From positions 1,064,457 through 1,128,456 of the forward strand of contig RHPI01000797.1 in assembly GCA_009103225.1 (NCBI GenBank): a DNA stretch of 64,000 bases, written 5' to 3'. How positions within the stretch are numbered: the first letter of the stretch is position 1; every line of letters starts with the position of its first letter. The stretch is from Chlorokybus atmophyticus. Its lineage: Eukaryota > Plantae > Mesostigma and Chlorokybus algae. Below the pieces are notes generated by a model. That model was not told the origin of the DNA. It made no database searches and was given only the letters and a program-made list of their open reading frames with translations. Positions 36,241-52,134 of the stretch are shown piece after piece. The position numbers were made by a program, and so were the translations under genes.

Positions 36241-39200
36241 ATGGACGACATTGAGGACATGGTGACTGCTGGAGCTTCTCCTCAGGGATTGCACCTCCCC
36301 CCGCCTCAGGTCTTTTACAAACCTCAGGTGGCGCAAGCAGAGGGCGTCTCAGTGGGCATTGTACCTGGCACCGAGGTAGGCGGCGGGAGTCCGTAGCTGG
36401 TTAAACGCTTGCATACTGGTTTGCTAAAATTTCTGTTGAATGTGCCATTGATTCCGTTCACCTACATAGCTATTACCGCGAGTGTGCCTTGCAGACCATC
36501 TACTTGAGGACGTTCGGGTGTTCTCACAACCGGGTAAGTCAATAAACACTACTTGTTGAGTGAAAGCTGAGTGTAATGTGCAATGTCAGTGCTTGAACTG
36601 ACGCAGTCCGGTACATTACAGAGCGATAGCGAATACATGGCCGGCTTGCTTCAAAGTTACGGTTACAGACTGACCGAAGAGCCGAGCGAGGCACACCTGT
36701 GGCTGATCAACTCGTGAGTACAAGTGCATGGCACTCTATTTTCAACGACAGTTTACGCGTGACGCATGCTGTGCACTTCTTGCATGCACAACACGCATAA
36801 TGCATGCAAGCACCCTCTTAGTCACGGATGTAGTAACATGCTTCTTCAATCGGTGTACCTAATGTCGTCTTGGTCGCAGCTATTTCACTTGCATCTTTTT
36901 GGCAGTTGTACAGTAAAGAACCCAAGTGAACAAGCTGTTGGCACCCTCGTACAACGGGGAAGAGACAGCGGAAAGAAAGTTGTTGTTGCAGGATGTGTGC
37001 CTCAGGGCGACCCAAAGAACAGAATGCTGCAGGTTCCAATCCTCATGCATTGCTGTTTCGGCAAGCAATCGGACGCTGTGTTCAGGGCGTTGTCTAACAA
37101 CATCATTTGTTGCAGGGCTTGAGTCTTCTTGGTGTAAAGCAGATTGGCCGGATTGTAGAGGTTGTTGAGGAGACCTTGAAGGGCAACTCAGTGCAGTTAC
37201 TGAGTAAGACGGGTCCCTTGCCAGATTTGGACTTACCCAAGGTGCTGTACTTTAGCTGTGTATATGGCATCACTACTAACACGCAAGCTTACATGCCTCA
37301 CATCATGTCTGTTTAGGTGCGGCGCAATGAATTTGTTGAGGTGATTCCCTTGAGCACAGGCTGTTTGGGCGCCTGCACTTATTGCAAGACAAAACATGCC
37401 AGGGGCGAACTTGGCAGCTATCCATTGGAGTCATTGGTAAGTTGGTGTCAATGTGTAAGTCAGTTGGCTTGGCTGAAAGCAACGACATTGCACACTTGCC
37501 CAACCACTAGACTTTCAACTACACCCTGACATCAGGTCTATTGCTGTCACTCAATCAGGTTGAACGAGCGCGAAGTGTTGTTCAAGAGGGTGTGAGAGAA
37601 ATCTGGCTCAGCAGCGAGGACACTGGTGCTTACGGTATCCAGTTATAGCTCACATCGCCGGCTGCTCCCTTGCAGTATAAACAAGCTTGTAACCCGCTTG
37701 GTGCGTTGTTTCAGGAAGGGACATTGGCACGAACCTGCCAGTTTTACTCCGAGGCATTGTGAGTGTCCTGCCCCGCGACAACAGTGTCATGCTCAGAGTT
37801 GGCATGACAAATCCGCCATTTATACTGGAGCACTTGGACGCTATGGCAGAGATCCTGAGGCATCCTTCTGTGTATGCATTTCTTCACGTGCCTGTGCAGT
37901 CTGGAAGTGATGCTGTACTACTGGTCAGTACAGTGACACGCTGTTTCGCAAGAACACTAGCTACTCATGTAGTATATCTGCACTCCGATGAAGTTGAGTT
38001 GTGGGGTTAGTCAATCGTTTCTTGATGCATTGTCCTAGAGGTGTCATTTGGGTCATCAGCAGGGATGGTTGTTCTTGCATGTAGCTGATGTGCATGACTT
38101 GCAGGGCATGAATCGCGAGTACACTTCCGCAGAGTTCAGATGTGTTGCAGACACTCTTCTTGCGCAAGTACCTGGTTTGCAGCTAGCAACGGATATCATA
38201 TGCGGGTTTCCAGGTCAGCAGAATTGCTCTTGGTTTACATGCACGCATCCTGGCCGTCCAGTCAACAGCATCATACTTATCACCGATGTCTGCAGGTGAA
38301 ACTGCATCAGATCATGAGCATACTATGTCCCTTGTCCGACAGTACCGCTTTCCTCATTTGCACATCTCGCAATTCTACCCACGACCTGGTTAGTTTAGTC
38401 CACTCAGCCAATGTGTAAAGGCCTGTGCTGCCAGCCCGTACATATTAAGCGCCTTGCGTGCTCATGCTACAACTACAGCAAACCTTCGCATGTGCGTAAC
38501 TCAGGTACACCTGCTGCGCGCATGAAACGAGTGCCCACAGCTGAGGTCAAGAGCAGAACTCGGGAGCTCACTGCGCTGTTTGAATCATTTGCGCCGTATC
38601 AGGGCTTGGAAGGCCGCACGGAAAGGGTGTGGGTCACGGAAGTTGCTAGTGATGGGACTAGCCTGGTAAGCCGAATCATGAGAATATATCTCTACAATTC
38701 CAGCCAGCAAACTGTCCTCGTGTACACACTGACATCACACTTTTGGACTCAACGCAATGGAGTCTTTATTTGAGGCCAGTTACTGATTGACTTGGTTTCA
38801 GGTGGGGCATACCAAGAACTACACACAAGTGCTGCTATCACCCACAGAGGGTCTACTGGGTAGAAGTGCCCTTGTTCGAATAACCTCTGTCTCCAGATGG
38901 AGTGTAAAGGCAGACATTGTGAGCGTGTTTCCCGACTGTGATGCTGCAGAGTTGTATGGACCGCAGCAGTGGCGGTTTGCAGAACAAGGAGCAGACGACA
39001 GAGCCAACAGTGGCACTGGCACTGGCACATCGTGTGCCTCAGATTGCACTTGCGATCAGGCAAGGGCAAAGCACAGTTGCACGTGTGCTACCATATTTGG
39101 CGAAGACGCGTCACTGGAGAATGGTGTTGGAGTCGGCAGGTTAGGGGCTTTGCTGGGTATAGCTACAAAGCATAAACCAATGGTGCTTGTAGATTGGCTG

Positions 39201-39287
39201 CTGTTAAGTGGCATGTTGGCGGGGGTTGGGGGCGTGGTATGTGCAGGTGTATTGACCTGCTACACAGCTTGGAGTTTAGGTACTTAA
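36241..39287 (+). CDS. CDKAL1: Threonylcarbamoyladenosine tRNA methylthiotransferase (radical SAM, TRAM domain, C-terminal membrane anchor)
   Basis: [59 protein letters not shown] (CxxxCxxC), [54 protein letters not shown] and a hydrophobic tail. Confidence 0.96.
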
Positions 39288-40007
39288 CAATAAGACAGCA
39301 GTCGTTTGCCAAGCTCATGCACGCCTTGAGGTCATGTGTCACAACTTCCTGTGCCTGTAGATATTCCGATGCAGCTGAGTATTTTGGAATCAGCGTACTT
39401 GATGCCTTCATGTAAACATCTAGTTAACTGCCTCCTCATGCGTCAATCGATGCTACACGTGCAAGCACACATGGCAGCACCCTTGCAAGCCCAAACGCAC
39501 ACCCACCCACCCATCCAGAGCTTCATTTACTAGAGGGCCTGGCTATGGGCCGAATGCAAGTAGCTTAGTGCAACCGAGGGAAAGACCAACGACGGCGATG
39601 ATGACAACATACAGCCGCAGCAAGGACCAATCGATTGTACCTTTCAGGAGGGTGTGTATAACTGTTGAAGTTGATTAACTTCGAGTCTAGGAGCACACGC
39701 ACTCTGTCAGCTTGATGGATGCATTGGGCGCACGTGCAATTCACACATAGCCATCACTATTACAACGCATGAAACAATGCAAAGAGGACGTGCTGTAAAG
39801 ATGGGTGACACTCAGCCATGTCTGAGACAGGTGTGGCAATCAGCGACCAAAGAGGCTAGCTACGCTCCATATTTGCCATTGACGGCATACTCAACTCGCC
39901 GTAGTTGCTTCCTAAGGTTGAAAACTGTACTACGGTAGCGCTCATAACAACAACTTTTCTCAACCCACGCATATGTACGAACCCGTCGCCGCCACAATTA
40001 GCGATGC

Positions 40008-40353: not shown

Positions 40354-41045
40354 TCTGTGCTTTGCTAGTTGTGCTTGCTGTGTTCGTACCCATTCATACA
40401 AGCTACCTTATATGCCATGTTGCGCCATGTTTGTGTGCATATATATTGTCAATTAATCATAAGATGTGCTCGTTGAGAATATTGGGTCTTTTATTATGTA
40501 ATGTTATACATTATTTCATAAAACATTGTTGAGTTTACTACTTTTATTTTTATCCCGATTACTTCATAATAAGCGCCCGTTGGTGAAAACCCCCATCGTT
40601 ATATCAGCAACAAATGTTAGATGTTGTATATTTATGTTTAGGTAGAATAATTTTATTGCATGCATCGTGTTGCGTGTAAACATGATATGTAATTTAACTT
40701 CATTGCAATGCTCACTTTAATGTCTCTCCTACTGTACTAATGTAAAAAATGAATGCGCGTTCAAAAGTGCCATCCATGAGTTCAGAGCGTCCACTTTAGT
40801 ATAGAGCGGGGACTCTTACCGAGTTATAAGTGACTAAAGTATTCATCAAATGCTTCAACAAATTCAAGCCGAATTCATATTTCGTCTAAAGATGTAATCA
40901 AGTCACTACTAGCAGTTGCACTAGCGAGGCTCGGACCGCGGTAGGGACAAACGGCTAGTGCGGGGCAGTTTGAAACACAGTCTGCTTGCCTGGCTGTGGT
41001 CGACCACATTGTTCATATCGCCGCCGCTGTCGCCGGGGCGGTGTG

Positions 41046-44000
41046 ATGCCACGCGGTGGTGGCATGGATGAGAACTTCTGTCCTGTATCGCCCAACATTT
41101 TCGGGGGCGGCGACGCTGGAGGGCTGAGCAGCAGTAGCAGCGGCAGCTTCAAGACACCACAGCCGCTGAGGCCTTCCAGGGCTGGGGTGGGCAGGCAGCA
41201 GCAGCAACAGCAGCAGCAGGGGGGCATGGGCGGGCCGCCCAAGTCGCCTGCCACCGTGGCGACGACACGTGGCGGGAGCTTTTGGGACAGGGGCGGCGGA
41301 GGTGGATTGTCGGAAAGCGCCCCTTGCTCTCCTCGTTCCTTGGGCTTCCAGATCAGTGGGGCTGACCTGCAAGCTGCGGCTGGGGCAGCCGCCTTGCTAG
41401 ACAGCAATGTGAAGGTTAGGGTGTGTTGCATGGTAACAATATTGTTGCGTGTGCATGTGGAGCGGTGGCGACAAATGGAAACTGCGACTCTTGTACAGAT
41501 CTTGTGCTGGGCAAACATGGTGTCTAACTAGTGACGTGTTAAGCATCCGCATGGGACGCAACCGTGTCAAGCATCATTTGCTGGAGTGCATGCACCGTGC
41601 ATTTGATGATCTCCAGATTCTTACTAATCCTAGCTGAATGCACTGCTTCATTGGGCACGTTCCATCCCTGTGGTAACACATGACAGGTAGTATCTCACAG
41701 TAGTCAGCTTCTTAGCCAGTCTGAGTTTGAGCATGCTAAGCACCTTTAACATCACACGCCATGCAAGATGTTTGCTGCTGATGACAATATGCGTGTTGGT
41801 CGGCAGGTCTTTGTGCGAGCTCGCCCTCTCAACCCAAGCGAGCTAGCTCAACCCTGCGTGCAAGTCGACGGCGACGAGTCGGTAGTGGTTAGCAGCGCGA
41901 GGAGCACAAACGGCACCCCTTCTCAACCGCAGCGGTTCACATTTGACAGAGTACTGGACGAGAATGCTACACAGGTGCTTTGAGATGCATACTGCCATCA
42001 AGCATGCGCACTTGCACGTCCCAACCAATTACTTGTTGCTTTGAGGCATGCACAGTCTTGGACAGCAGGGTTGATGGATGCCGTGCATGCGAACCCACGC
42101 ACGCGTCATTTTAAGAATTTCCAATCAATAGTGATGCCTGGCTTGCAGGAGGAGTTGTTTGAATCCGCTGTGAAGCCCATAGTGGAGAATTGCTTATTGG
42201 GTTACAACAGTAGCTTCTTCGCGTATGGTCAGGTAGATATGCTGGGCACCTGCGAACATGCTCTTGACCAGTTGCCTGATTCTTCTTTCAATCGCAGACT
42301 GGCAGTGGCAAGACGTACACTATGTTCGGCGCCCTTCCTGAGACAAGTACAGGATGGAGTCAATGCGCCCATCGCGGTGTCATACCAAGGATGTTTGAGC
42401 ATCTACTGGCGCGTGCAGCACAGGTATACACAAGGTGCTATAAGAGAGAAGTGAAGAGAGTAACTAAGTTTGTGTGAAGCAACTGCAAACAATCACCCTT
42501 TCTGTGCAGGAAGAGGCGCTCAATGGCACAGAGTTTCTGTGCAAGTGCTCGTTTGTAGAGGTAGGTGCCTGTGGTGTGACGGACTTACATGTTCCCACCG
42601 GCGAGTAGTGACGTGACTCTTTTGTTTCAGATATACAATGAACAAGTCAACGACCTGTTGGACCCGTCCAAGCGCAACCTCAAGGTGTGCGCTTCAGCTG
42701 CTGCTGTGCATCTATGGCTTCAAGCTTGCTGTGTTGCATGTCGCAACATTGTGTAATCAGCCAACTGCATATGTGCGGCAGGTTGTGGACGCACAGTCTG
42801 CTGACCGTGGTGCACACATCAAGGATGCCACTGAGCGTTTGGTAAAATCAGCGCAAGACATGTATGACCTTATTGCCCAGGTGTGTTGCCGTGTACTCTA
42901 CAGCAGAAATATCAAGCAGTATAACTGCAGAGGTTTTATCATCATGGCACATGTGGCATGTCTTGATTGTGGCTTGTATCAGGGTCTGGCAAACAGAAAG
43001 ACTGCCACCACCAACATGAACTGGGAGTCGAGCCGTTCACATTCCGTCATCACATGTTTGCTGGAGCGCAAGGTTTGCTTCTGACCTCCTGCTGCAACAG
43101 TGGCCAGTAGCTGTGCATGCACGTGTGCTCACGTGCATATGTATCCTCGCAGCATACCGCACCTGATGGCACTTTCAGCATCCGATACTCCAAGCTGAAC
43201 CTGGTGGACTTGGCTGGGTCAGAAAGGTGGGTGCTGGCTTAGTTCCTTGTTGCTGCTGTTCGTGAGTGCATAGTCTAATGTCCGTTTCAACAGGCAGAAG
43301 AGCTCCGGCGCGACAGGGGAGCGCTTGAAGGAAGCCTCCAACATTAACAAGTCCCTTTCTAACCTCGGGTAACCTTCTTGTGCATGCCATGCACAGCTGG
43401 GACGCACAGGCTGAACGGTAATGTCTGTTGCTCATCTGCAACTATTGTGCCAGGCTTGTTATCAAGCGTCTCATTGAAGCGCAAGGCAAGAAGACCTCAG
43501 CATTGCCTGTGCCTTACCGCGACTCCAAACTCACACACTTGCTGGAAGTAAGTGGAGTAAACAACAATGAACAGAAAAGTATAGCTATGAGCAAGTTTGA
43601 CAGCGGCAATTATGTTGCTTGCAGGAGTCCTTGGGTGGGAATGCATTCACTGCCATCGTTGCGAACATCAGTCCATCAAGCGGGTGAGCGCACGTGATAC
43701 TCATTGCAAGCCAATGTGTGCTGACTTGCTTAAATGGTGTTGGCATTCTTTCAGGTGCCATGAAGAAACACTCAGCACGTTGCAGTTTGCTCGCAGAGCA
43801 AAATTCCTGCCAAACAAGGTGACGTTTGTGTTTGCATCTTGTTGTTTTGCCTCAGTGTTCACGTGTAGAAACCACAGATAACCAATGTCACCACAATGTG
43901 CAGGCTCATGTCAATGAAGTAAGGAGCAGTCATGAACAGGAGTACCGCCTGCTGAGGTTTGAAGTGGAGAAACTGAAGGTGAGACTGCATGTGGGATCAG

Positions 44001-47000
44001 TGGCTGTTGCTTCCCTTCAATGCTGCATATTGCATGTTAGATCAAGTACCAATGTTGCAGGAGGTGCAGCAAGAGTGCTTGAAACGCGAGGCAGACACCG
44101 CGTCCCGGTTGACAAGACTCCAGTAAGCACACTTCGTTTGTTTTGCTTATGTACAAGGCAGTATTGCGATAACAAGCGTATTTGGTCTGCAGGAGCGAGC
44201 TTGAGGAAACAAACGGGCTTGCGAGCAGAACCGATGAAGAACTGGGCAGCCTCCAGCATGAGATGAGTGGAGTGACAAACAGCGTGGAGTGCCTGAAGGA
44301 AGAGGTCTCATGATGTGCAAGCCTGCTGTAACAAATGCACTGTGCTTGAGCGTAAGCACTTACTTCAACTGGTTGTGTTCCACAGGTGCGGGAGACTATG
44401 CAAAAGGCAGCCGACTCCCATACAGCCCATCAAGCCTTATTAGCGAAATTGGCACTCCTGGAAGGAGATTGCAGAGTTCAGCACCAGCGCATGCAGACTG
44501 ATGTTGCTGGCATCAGGGGAGAAGTTGAAGACACTGCACATGTGCTACAAGTGCTGGCTGCAAAGGTTCTCCCTAAAATGTTGATTTCCTTTAACAAGTG
44601 TGTATCGACGTCAGGGTGGCCCTGTTGAGTACCTCTGACAGATCGTGTTGCAGGTTGGAGGGTGCAGTGGCCGTGATGAGCTGTCTGAGACCTCGCGTGA
44701 AGTTGAGAAAATGGTCGGGGTGCTGATAGCAATGCAAGAGGTTTGTTTAACATTGCAGCACCCAGCATCTGCAACGCTGAGTGTTGTAACCTTTCCTTGT
44801 GTGTACTGCAGGCTGATGCGAAGCGTAAAGATGCTGTAATCAGCTTGCACGAGCGCGTGCGCACTCTTGCAGGTAGCTAGTAGCAATTGTCCGTTGTGCA
44901 ACTATAATGTCTGGTCTCTTGTAACTGTCTCTATGGAGCTATTGCGTGGTGTGGATGTCTGCACTCTTAGGGTTGTATCTGCTCTCTGTTGCAATGCAGC
45001 TGATGTTGTCTCGTATTGTATTGCAGCGGACGTGGAGCAGCTGCAGAGTCTACACAAGGGCGTGGTGAGCAGTCAATACATCCACACTTACCTTGACAAC
45101 CTGAACAGTGGTGCATCGGCTTGCAAGGCCTGATAACTGATTATGGTTTCAACAGGGAACTCGTGAAGCTCCTTTGCTGGAGGATAGGTTCAGCAATTTG
45201 GCAGCCAAACTCACTGATGTAAGCTGCCTGACTTACAGCTGCGCTTGCTCTGCTGCTCGCACAACGTTCATGTCAACTCACAGCAACACCCACCCGCAGG
45301 AGGCCACTGACTTCCGTTCAAAAGTGGCGGCTGAGGTAGAGTGGCAAGTGGAACTGAATGCTCAGAGCAAGGCCGAGCGCGAAGAAGAGCGTGCGGTGTG
45401 TGGCTTGACTCAACCTTCAAACCGTTTTTAAGCACCCGTTCACTGCAGCTTGCGTTCCTCACACTTGCAACACGCGACACACAGGCACTTGCTGCGTTGC
45501 ACAATGAGCTGTCGAGGTTTTTGTTGGAGCAGCGGACAGAAAACAAGAGCCTGCGCACCCACTTGAGTGAGCAGCAGCAGGTACGTGTTCTACCATAATC
45601 CAACCAAGTTTTGTGTGGTTGCAACACATCATGCATGTACATGTCAATGACTGCTGATGGTTCATGTGCCACCCCAGTCTATGCAAGTGATGCGCATAGA
45701 GTTTGGAGAGACTCTTAGCAAGTACACAGAAACGCTGACGAGTCAGGAAAAGCTGGTCGCGCATTACCAAAAGGCGCGCGAAGCTGACAAGGAGGTAGAC
45801 AAGTTCTCTCCTTCTGAAAGATCGCATGCTTGCGTGTTGTATGCAGTTGGCAAATAACTTTTGGGCTGCAGAACCTGGCGGCCACGCAACGAGAGCTTGC
45901 TAAGCTGCGTTCGGAGCATGAGGAGTTGCTGCACAGTCTGCGTGAAACACAGCTGCAGCAGGCTGAGGTGAACATCTGCGTGTTCCTCCAATGTGTTGCA
46001 TGTTTGTTCGGGGTGCATGCTTTGTCTGATGCCCCATCGCAGGATTTGCACTCCTTGCAATCTGGCTACTCGGAGCTGTCCATGATGGCCATGCCAGTGG
46101 AGTCCGCGTGCGCGCCTGCGGGCCAATCAATGGTAAACCCAGCTCGCTATGAGCTCTGCCATGTTGACTAGTGTTTTGTACTAAAGCTCAGCGGTTCCAG
46201 GCGCAAGACTTGCATCCCGATCAAGACCTCAGTGCCCTCCGTCAGGAGCTGTTTGCCAAGCTGGACAAGCAGGCCGCAGTTTTACGGCGATACCGCGACA
46301 TGCAAGCGACATCACAACTGGTTCGCTGTTCTGTTGCTGTTTGTCTTGGCAAAATGAACCTTGAAGAATTGCTTTTTAGAAAGCAGACTGGAGTCATGCT
46401 GTTTACGCGTCAACTTCGTGCAGGAATTGGAAACGGCACTGATCAATGAGAGAAGGGCGTTTGAGGGTCAGATGGCTGCTCATGCACGAGACCAAGAGGA
46501 GGTATGTCCATCAACTTGTTGTTCACAGAGCAGGATTGCAGTATTAACAATAATTGCACACATGTGTAACAGCGCTTATCGACGTTGAAGCAAGAGATGT
46601 TGGCTATGCTGGAGGAACGCTTGCAAATCACAAACAACACGACAACAGCACAACAGAGTCCATCCCAACAGCAGGTAAGATTTTGACACTCAGGATGCGG
46701 CATTGTTCAATGCTGCGCATTGTCCCACACAAGACTGCGTGTGGTTGTGCAGATGTCTGCCTCCGCGGAGCAGCAGGTTGACGAGAGCATGCATCCGACA
46801 GCGACTATACCGGTACGCATATTTGGACGCTCTGTGCAATGTGTCTGATCGTGTCAATTACTTGTTAAGTTGATTGATCGACTGACAAGCTGCTGTCACA
46901 TTGCCTTACCAAATTGTTTGAGGGTGCTTTGTCTCACTTGTAATGTAAATCAGGTTTGCACAGATGCCGACAATAAAGAGGCACCACCAGCAGCATGCAG

Positions 47001-48791
47001 TCCAGATCGAGTAGCAGAAGCATCCTCTTCATCGCCTTCAAGGCTAGAGGTGCTCATTGTAAAGGTGCTAGGGAGGGTGAGGACCAAACAATACCACATG
47101 CTTATGCTAAGTTGATGGTTATCAACAGGCTGAGAGGATTGCTGAATACACGTGCAAGACAACCATGCGCGGCCACAACTCTTACGTCACCTCGCTCACT
47201 GTCAGTGGTGGACACGTTTTCAGCGGTTCCTCAGATGGCAACATCAAGGTACTGAAGCAACATGTGTGCATCAGCCATGCAACGGACTCAGCTTCTGATA
47301 CCAAACGTGTATATGACGTACACTAGGCATGGAGGACATGTGATGGCATTTGTGCTGCCACACTTCAAGGCCACAATGGTGCAGTCAACGCATTGGCAGC
47401 CACGGACACGATGCTGTTCAGCAGTTCTCACGATGGCACTGTGAAGGTAGCAGCATGTGTCGGGCACTTCATAGTTGAAATAGTTGAAATAGATCACCAA
47501 GACTTTTGTTGCTTACACCTGCGAGTCGTCGTAGGCATGGAGGTTGTCGGACTGTGGTTGCGCCAGCACGCTGAGAGGTGGCAGCCAGTGCACCATCACG
47601 GCGTTGGCAGTCTCGGATGAGATCTTGTACAGAGGCTCCTCGGACGGCATGATCCAGGTACATGAAGTTGATAACATTTCTTGCCAGCTGTGCATGCGCT
47701 GACTGCTTTGCATTGTGTGTTAGGCGTGGAGGTTGTCAGACTACCGCGTGTGCGCAACGCTTCAGGCTCACGACGGGCTTATCACTTCTCTTGCTGTTGG
47801 TGACTCTGGCGTCTTGTACAGCACGTGTGCCGACGACCACACCATCAAGGTGCGTGCGTGTTGACAATGTTATTATTGTGCTTCACACCCATGGTCAGCT
47901 TATGCTGTCTGTCCAATTCGTGCTCCATCCAGGCGTGGAGCGTACCCGAGCACACGTGCCTGAACATCATGCGGGGTCACAGTGGTGCGGTATGGGGCTT
48001 GGCCGTGTCATCAGACAAGCTGTTCAGTGGCTCCTCTGATGGCACCATCAAGGTACAAGACTGCCAAGCAACAGTTGAACACATCTGCGCATGCATTGAC
48101 TTCTGAAGTGTTGCTCACTTACCCAATGTTGTAACATCAGCATGTAAACCAATGCATTGCGGTGTTGTGACAGTATCTTGCCTATGGTGATGGTAAATTG
48201 GTCATCTGCTCTTCAGGTTTGGGATGTGCCGTCGTACCGCTGCATTGCAACGCTGAGTGCCCACAGTGGTGCCATTCGCGCTCTCGCCGTCACGCAACCC
48301 GGAAGTATCTGCACTGAAGCACCGGACGCGGATGTGGTGTTGCTCTCAGGCGGTTGGGACGGCACTCTTAAGGCACACATGCACATGTTCGTTTGCATGC
48401 ACGTGATATTGTCTCAAGTGCACTGAACGTGCACACCAACTGATTGGCAGTCGCACTTATCACAGCCCAATAAATGAGCCTTTTGCTTACACGCAGTGGT
48501 TTGCGTCCTCGATTGCTGATTCTGGAGTTGTGCAGGTTTGGAGGTTGAGCGATTACAGCTGTGCCGGGACGCTCTTTGGTCACGGAGGCGCTGTGCGTGC
48601 GCTTGTTATTGCGGGAGAGGTTGTGTACTCGGGCTCTGAGGACAATACCATCAAGGTGCGTTGACAATGAACAACCTAATCATATTTTCCCTTTGTCTGT
48701 GTCAAGCCAGGTTTGTTCGCTTTGGCTGCTGATCGATCACTCACTGCTGGTGTGCAAACAGGTGTGGCACGATGGTGCAACCGACAACTGA
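41046..48791 (+). CDS. Kinesin-12-type motor with coiled-coil stalk and C-terminal seven-repeat WD40 domain, one continuous spliced ORF
   Basis: Motor: VFVRARP, FTFDRV, AYGQ|TGSGKTYT, CKCSFVE|IYNE, NWESSRSHS, LNLVDLAGSE|RQK, NINKSL, PYRDSKLT, ETLSTLQFA. The stalk exons I traced join in phase up to the WD40 exons at 47129-48655; stop at 48789-48791. Confidence 0.88.
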
Positions 48792-49283
48792 TTCGCTGCT
48801 GAGTTGGTTTAGGTAGAGTTGTGCTCGGACTCATTATTGAACATCGCCATTGTAGCTATTGTGTTGATCAGTAGTCATCGTGTATCCTTGTAATAAAGTG
48901 CCCTGTTCAGAAGCATGGTACGTAGGAATGCAAGTTGCTATTCTTGACGAGTTGTTGCCAACACCGTCAGGAATGGTCAAGACAGGGTACCACATTGCGT
49001 ATGCGATACTGCCTTGATGATGTATGAATCAAATCATGTCAACAAGAGCGCTCTTCAGACTTTGCCACTCAGCGCATTGCCAACATGTCGCTTGTACTGT
49101 GTAAAGACAGAAGTGTCACATTACACAGTACACGTGTTACAGGATCTCTTGTCTAAGTTGGAAACTTGGCATTTTTCAATTGACTAACAGGGCTCCAAAA
49201 ACTGGCAATAGTTTCATGTACTATGCCGCACACTGGCCTAATTTTGCAAGCATCACTCCAAACACACAACACACCCACACACT

Positions 49284-51494
49284 CTACTGCACATCATGTG
49301 CTCCGCAGTTCCTATCGCTCTCCTCTGTGCAGAACGTGAGGTAGCCGTCCTTCGCCAGAGCCTTAATGAGGGCGCGCTCGGCCTCGAACGAGTGCACGGG
49401 GTTGCCAGAACTCCTCTCCGTGCCCCGTAACCGGTAGTACTGGTAACTCACGCTCTTGCCTGCGTGCCGCAAAAACAACATGCTCTCAGCTGCTGAGTAG
49501 ATGTCTGGAGCCAAGTCAGTGTTACAACGACAGAACAGAAACGCAGTCCCATTCACTCAGAAACTCGAAAGTGGCGTTGGGGTTGGCAATGCGCTATATT
49601 ATATTATATCACACATCACATAAGCTAGTAGTGCCACAATCACTGCCACTGTTGTGTCTCACACCTGATTTTTGAGAGACAGTGCCGAAGCCGTACACGG
49701 TGACGCGCTCGCACAGCGCTAGGGCCAGCGCCACGCTGTAGATACCCGAGGAGGGCGTGGAGCCCCCCTCATACCGGGTGTTGAGTCCTGAAGCAAAGGT
49801 GTTGCTGTGTGAGCCCACATGTTGGGTTGCATTTGCATGTGCACATAAACAAGCATAGTGAAGTACATAACTGCACAGACTGACCTGCACACTTTCGCCT
49901 TTGTCGGAAGGCCGCCATAAGCTTGCGGACCCCGGAGCCGATGACAGATGATAGCGTCACTGCGCGTGGATGCGCAGCCTGATACGAATGTTGGTTTGTG
50001 TTGACCGTTTGCTGTAGGACTTCTTCGTGGCACTGCTTCACAAAATCAAAGACTAGACTCTCACCCGCAAGCGCGCCATGAGGGGCGGTTCCCCGCGGGA
50101 AGCCACGAGCGACATGTTGGGTTCCAAAGGCAGCCACTTGAGAAAGCTCGCCATTGCATACCTAACAGCAGCGATGGTCAGACAATGCTGACGCCAGCAT
50201 GCAAACATACTACCTACCGTACGCAGACATGTGTGCACACACACATGTACACGCAAGAACACGCACGCATGTGCACACACATGCACGTAAGGATGCGCAC
50301 ACACATGTGTGTGTGCGTGCACATGTCAGTACTCAGGTGCTGTACACAGACCGTTTGAGCCAGATCTTGTTGAGCATCCGTATGCTCGTCTTCCCGCCCA
50401 CATGCTTCTCATACCCCCGCGTCGGCGCCTGGTTCTGCCTTATCACCGCGCTATGCCCATCAATATTGCTCCCAAACCTGCACGCAACCCCACTCATCAC
50501 CTCACAGTCCTCACACACTCACCACACAACTCCTTCCCCCACCTCACCTCTTCAACAACAAGCTCCCGCTGTTTCCCACGACAGCACACGACCTCGAATC
50601 AAACCACTCCAGCGCGGAGGTGCCGTCCTTCTTGCGCAGGATGGGGGTGGTGGGTTGTGCGTGTGTTTGTGCGGATGTTGCGTGGGAGGGGAGGGGGAGG
50701 AAGGACTCGGGGAGGCCGCGGAGGGTGAAGGGGTCGCCGCGGGTGCAGGTTGGCTGTTGTGATGGGGGGGGTGAGTGTTGTTGTGCTGCTGACTGTGTGT
50801 TATATAGCCACACTGTGTAACAGGCGTATGTTCCTTTTAGTGCATATGCGTGCGTGCGTGCGAGCGTATGTACACAGGTGTGCATATGGGTAAGTACACG
50901 TGTGCATGTGAGCGGGTAAGTGGCTTTGACTGTGTGTGTGTGTGTGTGTATGCGTGAGCGTATGTTCATGTGCGTGTGCGTCCTCGGTTGTGCGTGCCAC
51001 CGGGCGCATGCATGTGTGCATTGCATGGAGTGGAGTCAACTGCAGGAAACAGCATTACATAATGCGCACAGCCTGAACGTACTGCTTGTGGAGCTGCTTT
51101 GTTCTTCTTTGCTTCGTGCCCGTTTGAACGCACGAGCGTGTCTGCTGTAGTGTTGTTGCGCTCAACACCCTCTTCACGCAGCTTGCGCACCTGCCGACAA
51201 CACCACATCTCACACACCCGAAAGATAACAAAACACACATGCATTAAGACTGAACTCACGCACCTGCTTCATCTGGCCATTCAACCGCGCATCCGTCAAT
51301 CTGACCACGTTCTCCCTCGCTTTACCCGTCTCGAGCAGTCGAGCGCGTTTGAACTGCCGGACATGTTGTGATGTGGCTGATATGGTGTTGATGTTACTCG
51401 CTTCTGGGGAGTTGCTTTCGTTGTGAAGAATTGCGCCTGTTAACACCGCCACCACGCACAGGCTGGCGACGAATATAAGCTTACGATGGCGCAT
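49284..51494 (-). CDS. Glycosyltransferase family 29 (sialyltransferase-like), type II membrane protein
   Basis: N-terminal anchor ([23 protein letters not shown]), sialylmotif [17 protein letters not shown]|[30 protein letters not shown], motif [24 protein letters not shown], motif III YQYY, motif VS HSFEAE. Confidence 0.92.
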
Positions 51495-51605
51495 GGTTTC
51501 GTCATGCAGTACTGTCTGGTGTGCACATTCCCCTTAATGCGATGCCGTTTGTCTGCAAGCCACAAGACGAGGAATGTTGATTGGTTTGTTGCATACGCGG
51601 GCGCG

Positions 51606-51614
<9 letters not shown>

Positions 51615-51660
<46 letters not shown>
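51615..51660. repeat. (AG)n microsatellite preceded by short (CA)n
   Basis: Directly visible. Confidence 0.97.
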
Positions 51661-51665
<5 letters not shown>

Positions 51666-52134
51666 GCTGGCATTGCTGCACACTCCGCCAAGGTTGCTGC
51701 TTCTTACGTCACATAAACCTCATTTCGCCCACAGGATGCATTAGTAGCACAAGAAGAGAATCTGATCCCAAGAATGAACGAGATGCTGCGTTTCGATCAA
51801 GTTCAAAAGATTGAAGCACACTTATGCAAGGAGACTCTTTTTAAACATTGCATACTCGACGGCAACCGTGACACTCGTCACAGCCATTGCCTGTAATCCC
51901 AACGATTGCAAACTCAGCAGCAGATAGCATTGCAGCAATAGCACAACATGCGCTCACCTCGACGTATCAGCAAGATCGTATCGCCTGCCGCCGCCGCCGC
52001 CGCCGCCGCCAGCAGCTGCCACGTGTCCTGCTCTCAGCCCCAACGGCAAGCTACTTGATGTCGATGCCACCGCACGTGATGCACGAATAAACTCGCTTGA
52101 ATCAGTGATGGCAGAGATATCCCAAATCCGAATC

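Follow-up and report, generated by a model that had tools for sequence, protein, structure and literature searches.

Can a kinesin-12-type motor carry a WD40 propeller in place of its usual tail? The question is raised by a plus-strand gene in a window of 64,000 nucleotides from Chlorokybus atmophyticus, which belongs to one of the streptophyte green-algal lineages most distant from land plants. Kinesin-12 proteins (POK, PAKRP1) are central in plant cytokinesis, and their tails set destination and cargo. An earlier note, made from the sequence alone, had proposed a kinesin-12-type motor joined to seven C-terminal WD40 repeats in an early streptophyte. The host is confirmed by the database copy of the protein, which is named as C. 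atmophyticus gene Chrsp45S06036. In a 2006 survey, no WD-40 kinesin turned up in photosynthetic eukaryotes (PMC1434745). We find that the fusion of motor and propeller is real and expressed.

The spliced gene model has 39 exons and encodes about 1316 residues, with a low-complexity N-terminus, the motor, a stalk, an acidic linker and seven WD40 repeats in that order. The coding sequence extends from a predicted ATG at 41046 (alternative ATG at 41064) to a TGA at 48791, and the frame is open with zero stops across all 39 joined exons, in line with the earlier claim that no forced stop interrupts the motor, coiled-coil and WD40 parts. The transcription unit, traced over 41046–48911, is defined by the gene model, a spliced transcript contig and identity to a public protein; the genes flanking it are separate. 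The public annotation of C. atmophyticus already contains this gene as Chrsp45S06036 (protein P0002 here), and an uncharacterised protein in public data is what was already known of it. The public model begins at the second ATG, 41064, and in a global alignment it is identical to the 39-exon model except for the start codon and a gap of 12 residues, corresponding to residues 1256–1267 in blade 6 of the propeller. P0002 lacks these residues because the annotation avoids the GC-AG intron 37 (48373–48535) that is seen in transcripts, using instead a GT donor 36 nt upstream. The joint of this intron, 48370/48534 with a cut ambiguity of 3 nt, is found in contigs of two public sequencing runs, X1 and X2.

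A single spliced contig from run X1, of 3944 nt and with a depth of 26, joins the exons of motor, stalk, linker and propeller as one mRNA. It leads from the motor exons through the propeller exons to 120 nt beyond the stop codon, placing the end of the 3´ UTR at 48911 at least. When the contig was compared with the genome from position 43000, inside the motor, onward, its 31 joints coincided with the 31 predicted introns, with those of the motor part found from 43072/43153 on. The joints 46812/46954 and 47049/47129 are spliced in contigs of both runs, which are independent; short contigs of X2, from a second study, contain the same splices at the border of stalk, linker and propeller. At junction 46674/46753, an X2 contig reaches 46674 and then carries 11 further letters that agree with the start of exon 30 at all but one position. 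The three junctions singled out in the earlier note were thus correctly placed to within one base. The runs must be cDNA-derived because the contigs are intron-free, and assembled contigs leave room for additional tail-less or propeller-only isoforms. The contig offsets put the 5´ end of the transcript near 41173 and reveal 24 extra nt around exons 22–23; from these offsets and the depth bins we infer corrected limits of 45300–45395 for exon 22 and 45485–45580 for exon 23.

Exon 1 (41046–41414) encodes a Gly/Gln/Ser-rich extension of 123 residues that is mildly basic (pI 9.4) and had zero matches in a Pfam scan. The motor domain follows in exons 2–13 (41807–43818), residues 127–464 of the 1316-residue model, and is identified by Pfam, by single exons that are collinear with the Kinesin family in an exon-by-exon search and by KIF15 as the top structure. 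In P0002, Kinesin (PF00225) scores 350 bits over residues 121–458 and covers profile positions 1–325 of 327. All the motor motifs listed in the earlier note were recovered: the P-loop GQTGSGKT is intact across the exon 3/4 junction, and switch I (NxxSSRSH) and switch II (DLAGSE) are intact in exons 8 and 9, respectively. The L12 motif VPYRDSKLT is present as well. Against solved structures, the motor scores 316 bits with KIF15, 277 with KIF3B, 255 with Eg5 and 228 with KIF4, which places KIF4 structures 88 bits below KIF15. The best 120 database matches to the protein are all named KIN-12E/G, POK or KIF15-like, at 47–54% identity, and the highest scores (355–364 bits) belong to land-plant KIN-12E/G. 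By similarity ranking the motor is kinesin-12-like, and the assignment to kinesin-12 instead of kinesin-4 is upheld.

Exons 14–29 (43904–46674) encode the neck linker and a helical coiled-coil stalk of about 490 residues with three breaks, as judged from the model and the heptads. A single-sequence AlphaFold2 model of the stalk has four helices of 55–165 residues each. Hydrophobic enrichment at heptad positions a and d is 0.44 as compared to 0.26 ± 0.02 in shuffles, about 9 SD above. When the stalk (P0002 471–1000) was compared by phmmer with 120 fetched kinesin-12 proteins, only the protein itself was found at E < 1e-3; these are KIN-12E/G-type by length and source names, such that effectively that class alone was tested. 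A scan of metagenomes with the stalk returned 136 pattern matches and zero relatives. The stalk is followed by a linker of about 60 residues in exons 30–31 (46753–47049). It is rich in Ser, Ala, Pro and Gln, has zero Pfam matches, and is predicted to be disordered (pLDDT < 50 in the AlphaFold2 model), with a net charge of –6 and a pI of 4.3.

The remaining exons, 32–39 (47129–48791), comprise seven WD40 repeats by Pfam, repeat alignment and AlphaFold2. Each repeat is one exon, and a short last exon adds the strand that closes the propeller, together with the stop codon. Phase-0 introns divide all repeats at the same site, after K and before V/A-W. Four of the exons match PF00400 individually, and in P0002 this family scores 111 bits with repeats over residues 1005–1298. 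The seven repeats proposed earlier are modelled as a canonical seven-bladed propeller with 28 strands (pLDDT 89.9, pTM 0.87); the model was built from P0002, without the 12 residues of blade 6, and confidence is lowest there. Foldseek matched it at TM 0.85–0.87 with LIS1, WDR5, RACK1 and a seven-bladed designer propeller. The propeller has a net charge of –8 and a pI of 5.7. Of the solved structures, Tako8 (247 bits) is nearest to the tail in sequence, followed by 2YMU with 239 bits. A word search with the WD40 region gave, at 190–331 bits, generic many-repeat WD40 proteins of bacteria and fungi in which the arrays are linked to NACHT, nSTAND, TIR or AAA domains. The mean pairwise identity of the repeats is 42% in protein and 52% in DNA, and their introns are unrelated, which suggests an old blade cassette, not a newly copied one. 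That every blade is a separate exon suggests a cassette shaped within a eukaryotic genome.

How does this layout relate to known systems? With kinesin-12 (KIN-12E/G of the At3g44050 type, POK1/2, PAKRP1, KIF15) the protein shares the N-terminal motor, where similarity is the highest of the families tested, as well as a long coiled-coil stalk and a similar length of around 1300 residues. However, the stalk has no detectable similarity to those of the fetched plant kinesin-12 proteins of the KIN-12E/G type, and a WD40 propeller takes the place of their C-terminal partner-binding regions. STAND/HET-E-type propellers (Nostoc 2YMU, and the designed Tako8 and WRAP-T) share consensus-like WD40 similarity that is confined to the repeats. 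Those proteins have an NTPase (NACHT/NB-ARC/nSTAND) before the WD40 part and at least 14 repeats, whereas the Chlorokybus protein has a single seven-blade propeller with one exon per blade and no such NTPase in the Pfam lists seen. These lists are the precomputed one for P0002 and the best 25 of the 31 families that matched in the scan; every family in them is Kinesin, Microtub_bd or of WD40 type, and a kinesin-related tail family is absent from them, as is PF23203, the regulatory coiled-coil of KIF21A. The propeller was probably acquired as an exon-per-blade cassette of consensus-like STAND/HET-E-type WD40.

The animal kinesin-4 proteins KIF21A and KIF21B have the same order of N-terminal motor, stalk, linker and C-terminal seven-repeat WD40 domain. 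Their motor is kinesin-4, unlike that of the Chlorokybus protein with its higher score for KIF15 than for KIF4, and the linker of KIF21B is rich in proline, serine and arginine whereas the one described here is acidic. Because motor family and linker differ and PF23203 is absent from the Pfam lists seen, the likeness to KIF21 is best read as convergent.

The fusion is apparently lineage-restricted. A word-filtered search of 5.8 billion proteins did not reveal any other protein with both a kinesin-12-like motor and WD40 repeats, and a whole-length word search, used as an architecture search, gave no match scoring above the motor-only ones. There were no kinesins among the matches of the WD40-region word search, and none of the kinesin-12 relatives fetched contains WD40 repeats. 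In the Atlas, searched with protein-language features, KIF21 clusters were the sole clusters resembling the whole protein, and zero matches were left once clusters with PF23203 were excluded; the tail retrieved generic WD40 clusters. An exhaustive search of representatives, with a query of 97 residues translated from exon 7, the read-through intron and exon 8, recovered P0002 among 36 matches, mostly short fragments; its top match, a Sushi-repeat protein, is spurious and was probably drawn in by the cysteine-rich translated intron. Among the papers found on kinesins and WD40 in plants, algae or Chlorokybus, no such protein is described. The proposal of an undescribed architecture holds for the literature found; the gene model was already public as an uncharacterised protein. 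A wide occurrence in green lineages, which would have spoken against the earlier interpretation, did not emerge from these searches.

The reading we favour, and regard as reasonably probable, is that the Chlorokybus gene encodes a kinesin-12-type motor in which the tail has been replaced by an acidic linker and a WD40 propeller that docks a partner. The stalk would mediate dimerisation, and the dimer would walk to microtubule plus ends, the direction typical of N-terminal-motor kinesins with this neck type. The paired propellers at its far end would offer a partner protein or a cargo adaptor a place to dock. The protein is probably a dimeric plus-end motor with a partner-binding propeller, and by analogy with other kinesin-12 members its likely setting is the spindle or cytokinesis.

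One alternative is that linker and propeller are a second microtubule-binding or tip-holding element that regulates plus-end dynamics instead of carrying a partner. The precedent is KIF21B: among kinesins built this way it alone is well studied, and its linker and WD40 domain bind microtubules and pause plus ends (PMC5383399). The restriction of whole-protein resemblance in the Atlas to KIF21 clusters points the same way, as does the finding that LIS1, which regulates the microtubule motor dynein, is one of the nearest seven-bladed folds. However, microtubule binding by KIF21B requires its proline/serine/arginine-rich linker (PMC5383399), and the negative charge of both linker and propeller in the Chlorokybus protein is unfavourable for contact with the acidic tubulin surface. 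This acidity would argue, if only indirectly, against KIF21B-style binding and against the propeller as a second microtubule-binding site. With a motor that is not kinesin-4 and no PF23203 in the Pfam lists seen, we consider such a role unlikely.

A different alternative is that exon shuffling produced the fusion by accident, recently and in this lineage only. It would then have little if any adaptive role, with a tail that is expressed but dispensable or that mainly autoinhibits or destabilises the motor. That the layout was found in no other protein searched is what such an accident would predict. Against it, the 39-exon frame is intact, the canonical WD40 signature is kept, the fold is confident, the mRNA assembles at the depth given above, and the diverged repeats with unrelated introns speak for an old cassette; we regard an accident as improbable. 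Finally, it is very hard to sustain that a kinesin-12 gene and a WD40 gene starting at the in-frame ATG that opens exon 30 (46753) were merely joined by read-through or chimeric assembly, contigs being no proof of a single molecule, since the mRNA splices exon 29 onto exon 30 in the X2 contig, exons 28–29 and 30-31-32 are spliced in phase through GT-AG introns in two independent studies, the linking exons are all open in frame, the introns near the stalk/linker/propeller junction are just 78–141 nt, with the 78-nt one before exon 30 too short for a promoter and a 5´ UTR, and the public annotation also has a single gene.

In conclusion, partner docking by a replaced tail remains our preferred reading of this kinesin. 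A more far-reaching version of it, possible but tentative, is that the protein is an independent KIF21-like motor on a kinesin-12 chassis, which captured a HET-E/STAND-type cassette and serves as a partner-recognising plus-end motor in a cytokinesis that lacks a phragmoplast. Published surveys tie class II kinesin-12, at least, to the origin of the phragmoplast. The public gene model can be corrected by restoring the 12 residues of blade 6 through the GC-AG intron. The impact is limited in that a single organism is so far known to carry the fusion and its roles are putative. A propeller-tailed kinesin-12 would imply that the tail of this family is evolutionarily plastic, and it would add a second, independent design of motor and WD40 beside animal KIF21. 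A comparison of the two could then address whether a propeller on a kinesin always touches microtubules or is a general docking module. If the reading of a convergent capture is true, the Chlorokybus protein would be an example from nature of motor tails that evolved convergently, and it may offer a view of kinesin-12 function before the phragmoplast.

The fusion proposed in an earlier note, a kinesin-12-type motor carrying a C-terminal WD40 domain of seven repeats, is encoded by one gene of 39 exons on the + strand (ATG at 41046, TGA at 48791). It was modelled by reading 40900–49100, translated in the three + frames, and setting coding blocks between consensus splice sites. Introns are 65–392 nt long, in phase 0 in 32 of 38 cases, and GT-AG except for intron 37 (48373–48535), which is GC-AG. 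Translation would start at 41046 or 41064, and the 5´ end of the transcript contig from public sequencing run X1 falls at ~41173 by offset. Against this contig, the first gene model was 24 nt too short between 44386 and 46201. The frame would equally stay open if a shorter exon 22 (donor 45336) were paired with a longer exon 23 (acceptor before 45449), but this pair was rejected; because contig offsets and depth bins fit donor 45396 and acceptor 45484 instead, exon 22 was extended by 60 nt (45300–45395, + strand) and exon 23 shortened by 36 nt (45485–45580, + strand), after which all depth bins match the model within ~6 nt. The corrected protein has 1316 residues.

That motor, coiled coil and WD40 domain reside in one mRNA is borne out by contigs from two studies, which between them contributed four runs of one organism to the sequencing-run index. 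The contigs were compared with 43000–48950. A single X1 contig of 3944 nt (depth 26) begins to the left of this stretch and extends to 48911; 31 joints were tallied, matching the 31 model introns, and the 15 listed, all from X1, are consistent with the model, among them 46501/46573, 46812/46954, 47049/47129 and the GC-AG intron 37. Run X2, from the other study, yielded three short spliced contigs covering exons 28–29 plus the opening 11 letters of exon 30 (one mismatch), exons 30–32, and exons 36–39. The junctions singled out for transcript checking are thus spliced in both runs at 46812/46954 and 47049/47129, and from 46674 to exon 30 by the 11 letters in X2. The RNA nature of the runs is a tool's guess; the absence of introns from the contigs shows that the runs derive from cDNA, barring a processed retrocopy. 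A separate promoter before the WD40 exons has no space, as the introns around the border are only 78, 141 and 79 nt, in agreement with the original reading.

The neighbouring genes are separate from it. Upstream, a + strand gene at 36766–39290 carries a CxxxCxxC radical-SAM-like motif and reads like a radical-SAM methylthiotransferase (CDKAL1/MiaB-like), single exon-sized pieces giving only a weak radical-SAM-type Pfam match; it ends (~39290) about 1.7 kb before the ATG. Downstream, on the − strand, lies a gene with an exon match to glycosyltransferase family 29 (sialyltransferase-like; 49284–49890; 32 bits, family cut-off 23). Long tracts rich in CA/TG and GA/TC dinucleotides occur at 50200–51700; the ORFs they yield on both strands encode His-Thr and Arg-Glu repeats, and the tracts, microsatellite-like, probably do not code for protein.

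Public annotation already contains the fusion gene, as an unnamed, uncharacterised protein. An exhaustive search with a 97-residue reference recovered P0002 (1298 residues), named eukprot jgi/Chlat1/6570/Chrsp45S06036 in the word search, the JGI annotation of Chlorokybus atmophyticus, an early streptophyte as the note supposed. It is identical to our model save in two places: it begins at the second ATG, and 12 residues encoded by the last part of exon 37 (WD40 blade 6; 48337–48535) are missing from it, because the annotators took a GT donor lying 36 nt 5´ of the GC donor; transcript contigs from both studies use GC-AG 48373–48535.

The motor is intact, as first described. Taken singly, exons match consecutive parts of the Pfam Kinesin profile, the whole-protein scan gives 350 bits (P0002 residues 121–458), and direct reading of the + strand places the P-loop across the exon 3/4 junction, switch I (NMNWESSRSH) in exon 8, switch II (DLAGSE) in exon 9 and the L12 motif (VPYRDSKLT) in exon 11. 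Among solved structures it scores highest with KIF15 (316 bits), followed by KIF3B (277), OSM-3 (258), Eg5 and fungal kinesin-1 (255), KIF13B (245) and KIF4 (228). The best 120 matches in a collection of 5.8 billion proteins (355–364 bits, 47–54% identity) are land-plant or unnamed Logan (public-run) assembly proteins of 850–2055 residues, with the source names KIN-12E, KIN-12G, "like AT3G44050" or POK. This similarity ranking supports placement in kinesin-12, as the note had it, and rejects a kinesin-4/KIF21 identity; the KIF21A regulatory family PF23203 is likewise absent by Pfam. Between the stalk and the fetched plant kinesin-12 proteins no similarity could be detected.

Folded alone, the stalk is predicted to form four long helices (P0002 463–606, 613–667, 673–837 and 862–945) followed by a disordered stretch (946–1010). 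With a hydrophobic a/d heptad enrichment of 0.44 against 0.26 ± 0.02 in 50 shuffles, it is consistent with a hinged coiled-coil dimer. The linker (exons 30–31, 46753–47049) is acidic and disordered (net charge −6, pI 4.3), and the propeller (−8, pI 5.7) matches WD40-type families over P0002 1005–1298, PF00400 being matched by four of the seven repeat exons singly. Folded with 36 WD40 relatives, the tail is predicted to have 28 strands in the seven blades anticipated from its repeats (mean pLDDT 89.9, with a dip where P0002 misses 12 residues; pTM 0.87), and superposes on seven-bladed propellers including LIS1, WDR5, RACK1 and beta-TrCP with TM 0.83–0.87.

So far the combination has been seen in one organism and is not described in the papers searched; its gene model was already public. 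None of the best 120 motor relatives has WD40, a tail-only search returned 120 WD40 proteins with a motor in P0002 only, and a whole-length search with words from motor, stalk and tail gave nothing above the motor-only 364 bits; these searches, in which a word prefilter scores 8000 candidates, covered proteins of 714–2271 residues and would miss orthologs split by annotation in other algae. ESM Atlas look-alikes were KIF21 clusters only, none being left once these were excluded, and a metagenome scan found no stalk relatives. WD-40 repeats were counted among the kinesin domains "not found in photosynthetic eukaryotes" (Richardson et al., 2006; PMC1434745), and a recent green-lineage kinesin survey sampled neither Chlorokybus nor Mesostigma (bioRxiv 10.1101/2023.11.22.568388).

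Judged by its repeats, which share 28–53% identity (mean 42%), the tail is a consensus-like WD40 array. Among solved structures it is matched best by Tako8, a designed propeller (247 bits), by 2YMU, a highly repetitive protein of Nostoc (239 bits), and by FBXW7; the top-scoring database proteins are WD40 arrays of bacteria and fungi joined to NACHT, nSTAND, TIR, AAA-like or kinase domains. Within 47129–48791 each of the seven repeats occupies exactly one exon, and the phase-0 intron always follows the repeat-ending K and precedes the V/A-W opening the next. This regularity suggests that an exon-plus-intron unit was amplified or transferred inside a eukaryotic genome. DNA identity is 52% among the repeat exons and ~30%, near random, among the intron flanks; the event is not recent, which suggests an old exon-per-blade cassette.

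Kinesins with an N-terminal motor, a conventional neck linker and a coiled-coil dimer walk toward plus ends. By this established biology, the protein would dimerise through its coiled coil and move to plus ends. Its tail could dock a partner or touch microtubules. Microtubule binding by KIF21B needs a proline/serine/arginine-rich linker plus the WD40 domain (PMC5383399). Because linker and propeller are here acidic, in contrast to the KIF21B linker, we favour docking of a partner or adaptor. The tails of plant kinesin-12 proteins bind partners at the division site or cell plate, and by analogy the most economical guess is that the protein may act in the spindle or in cytokinesis.
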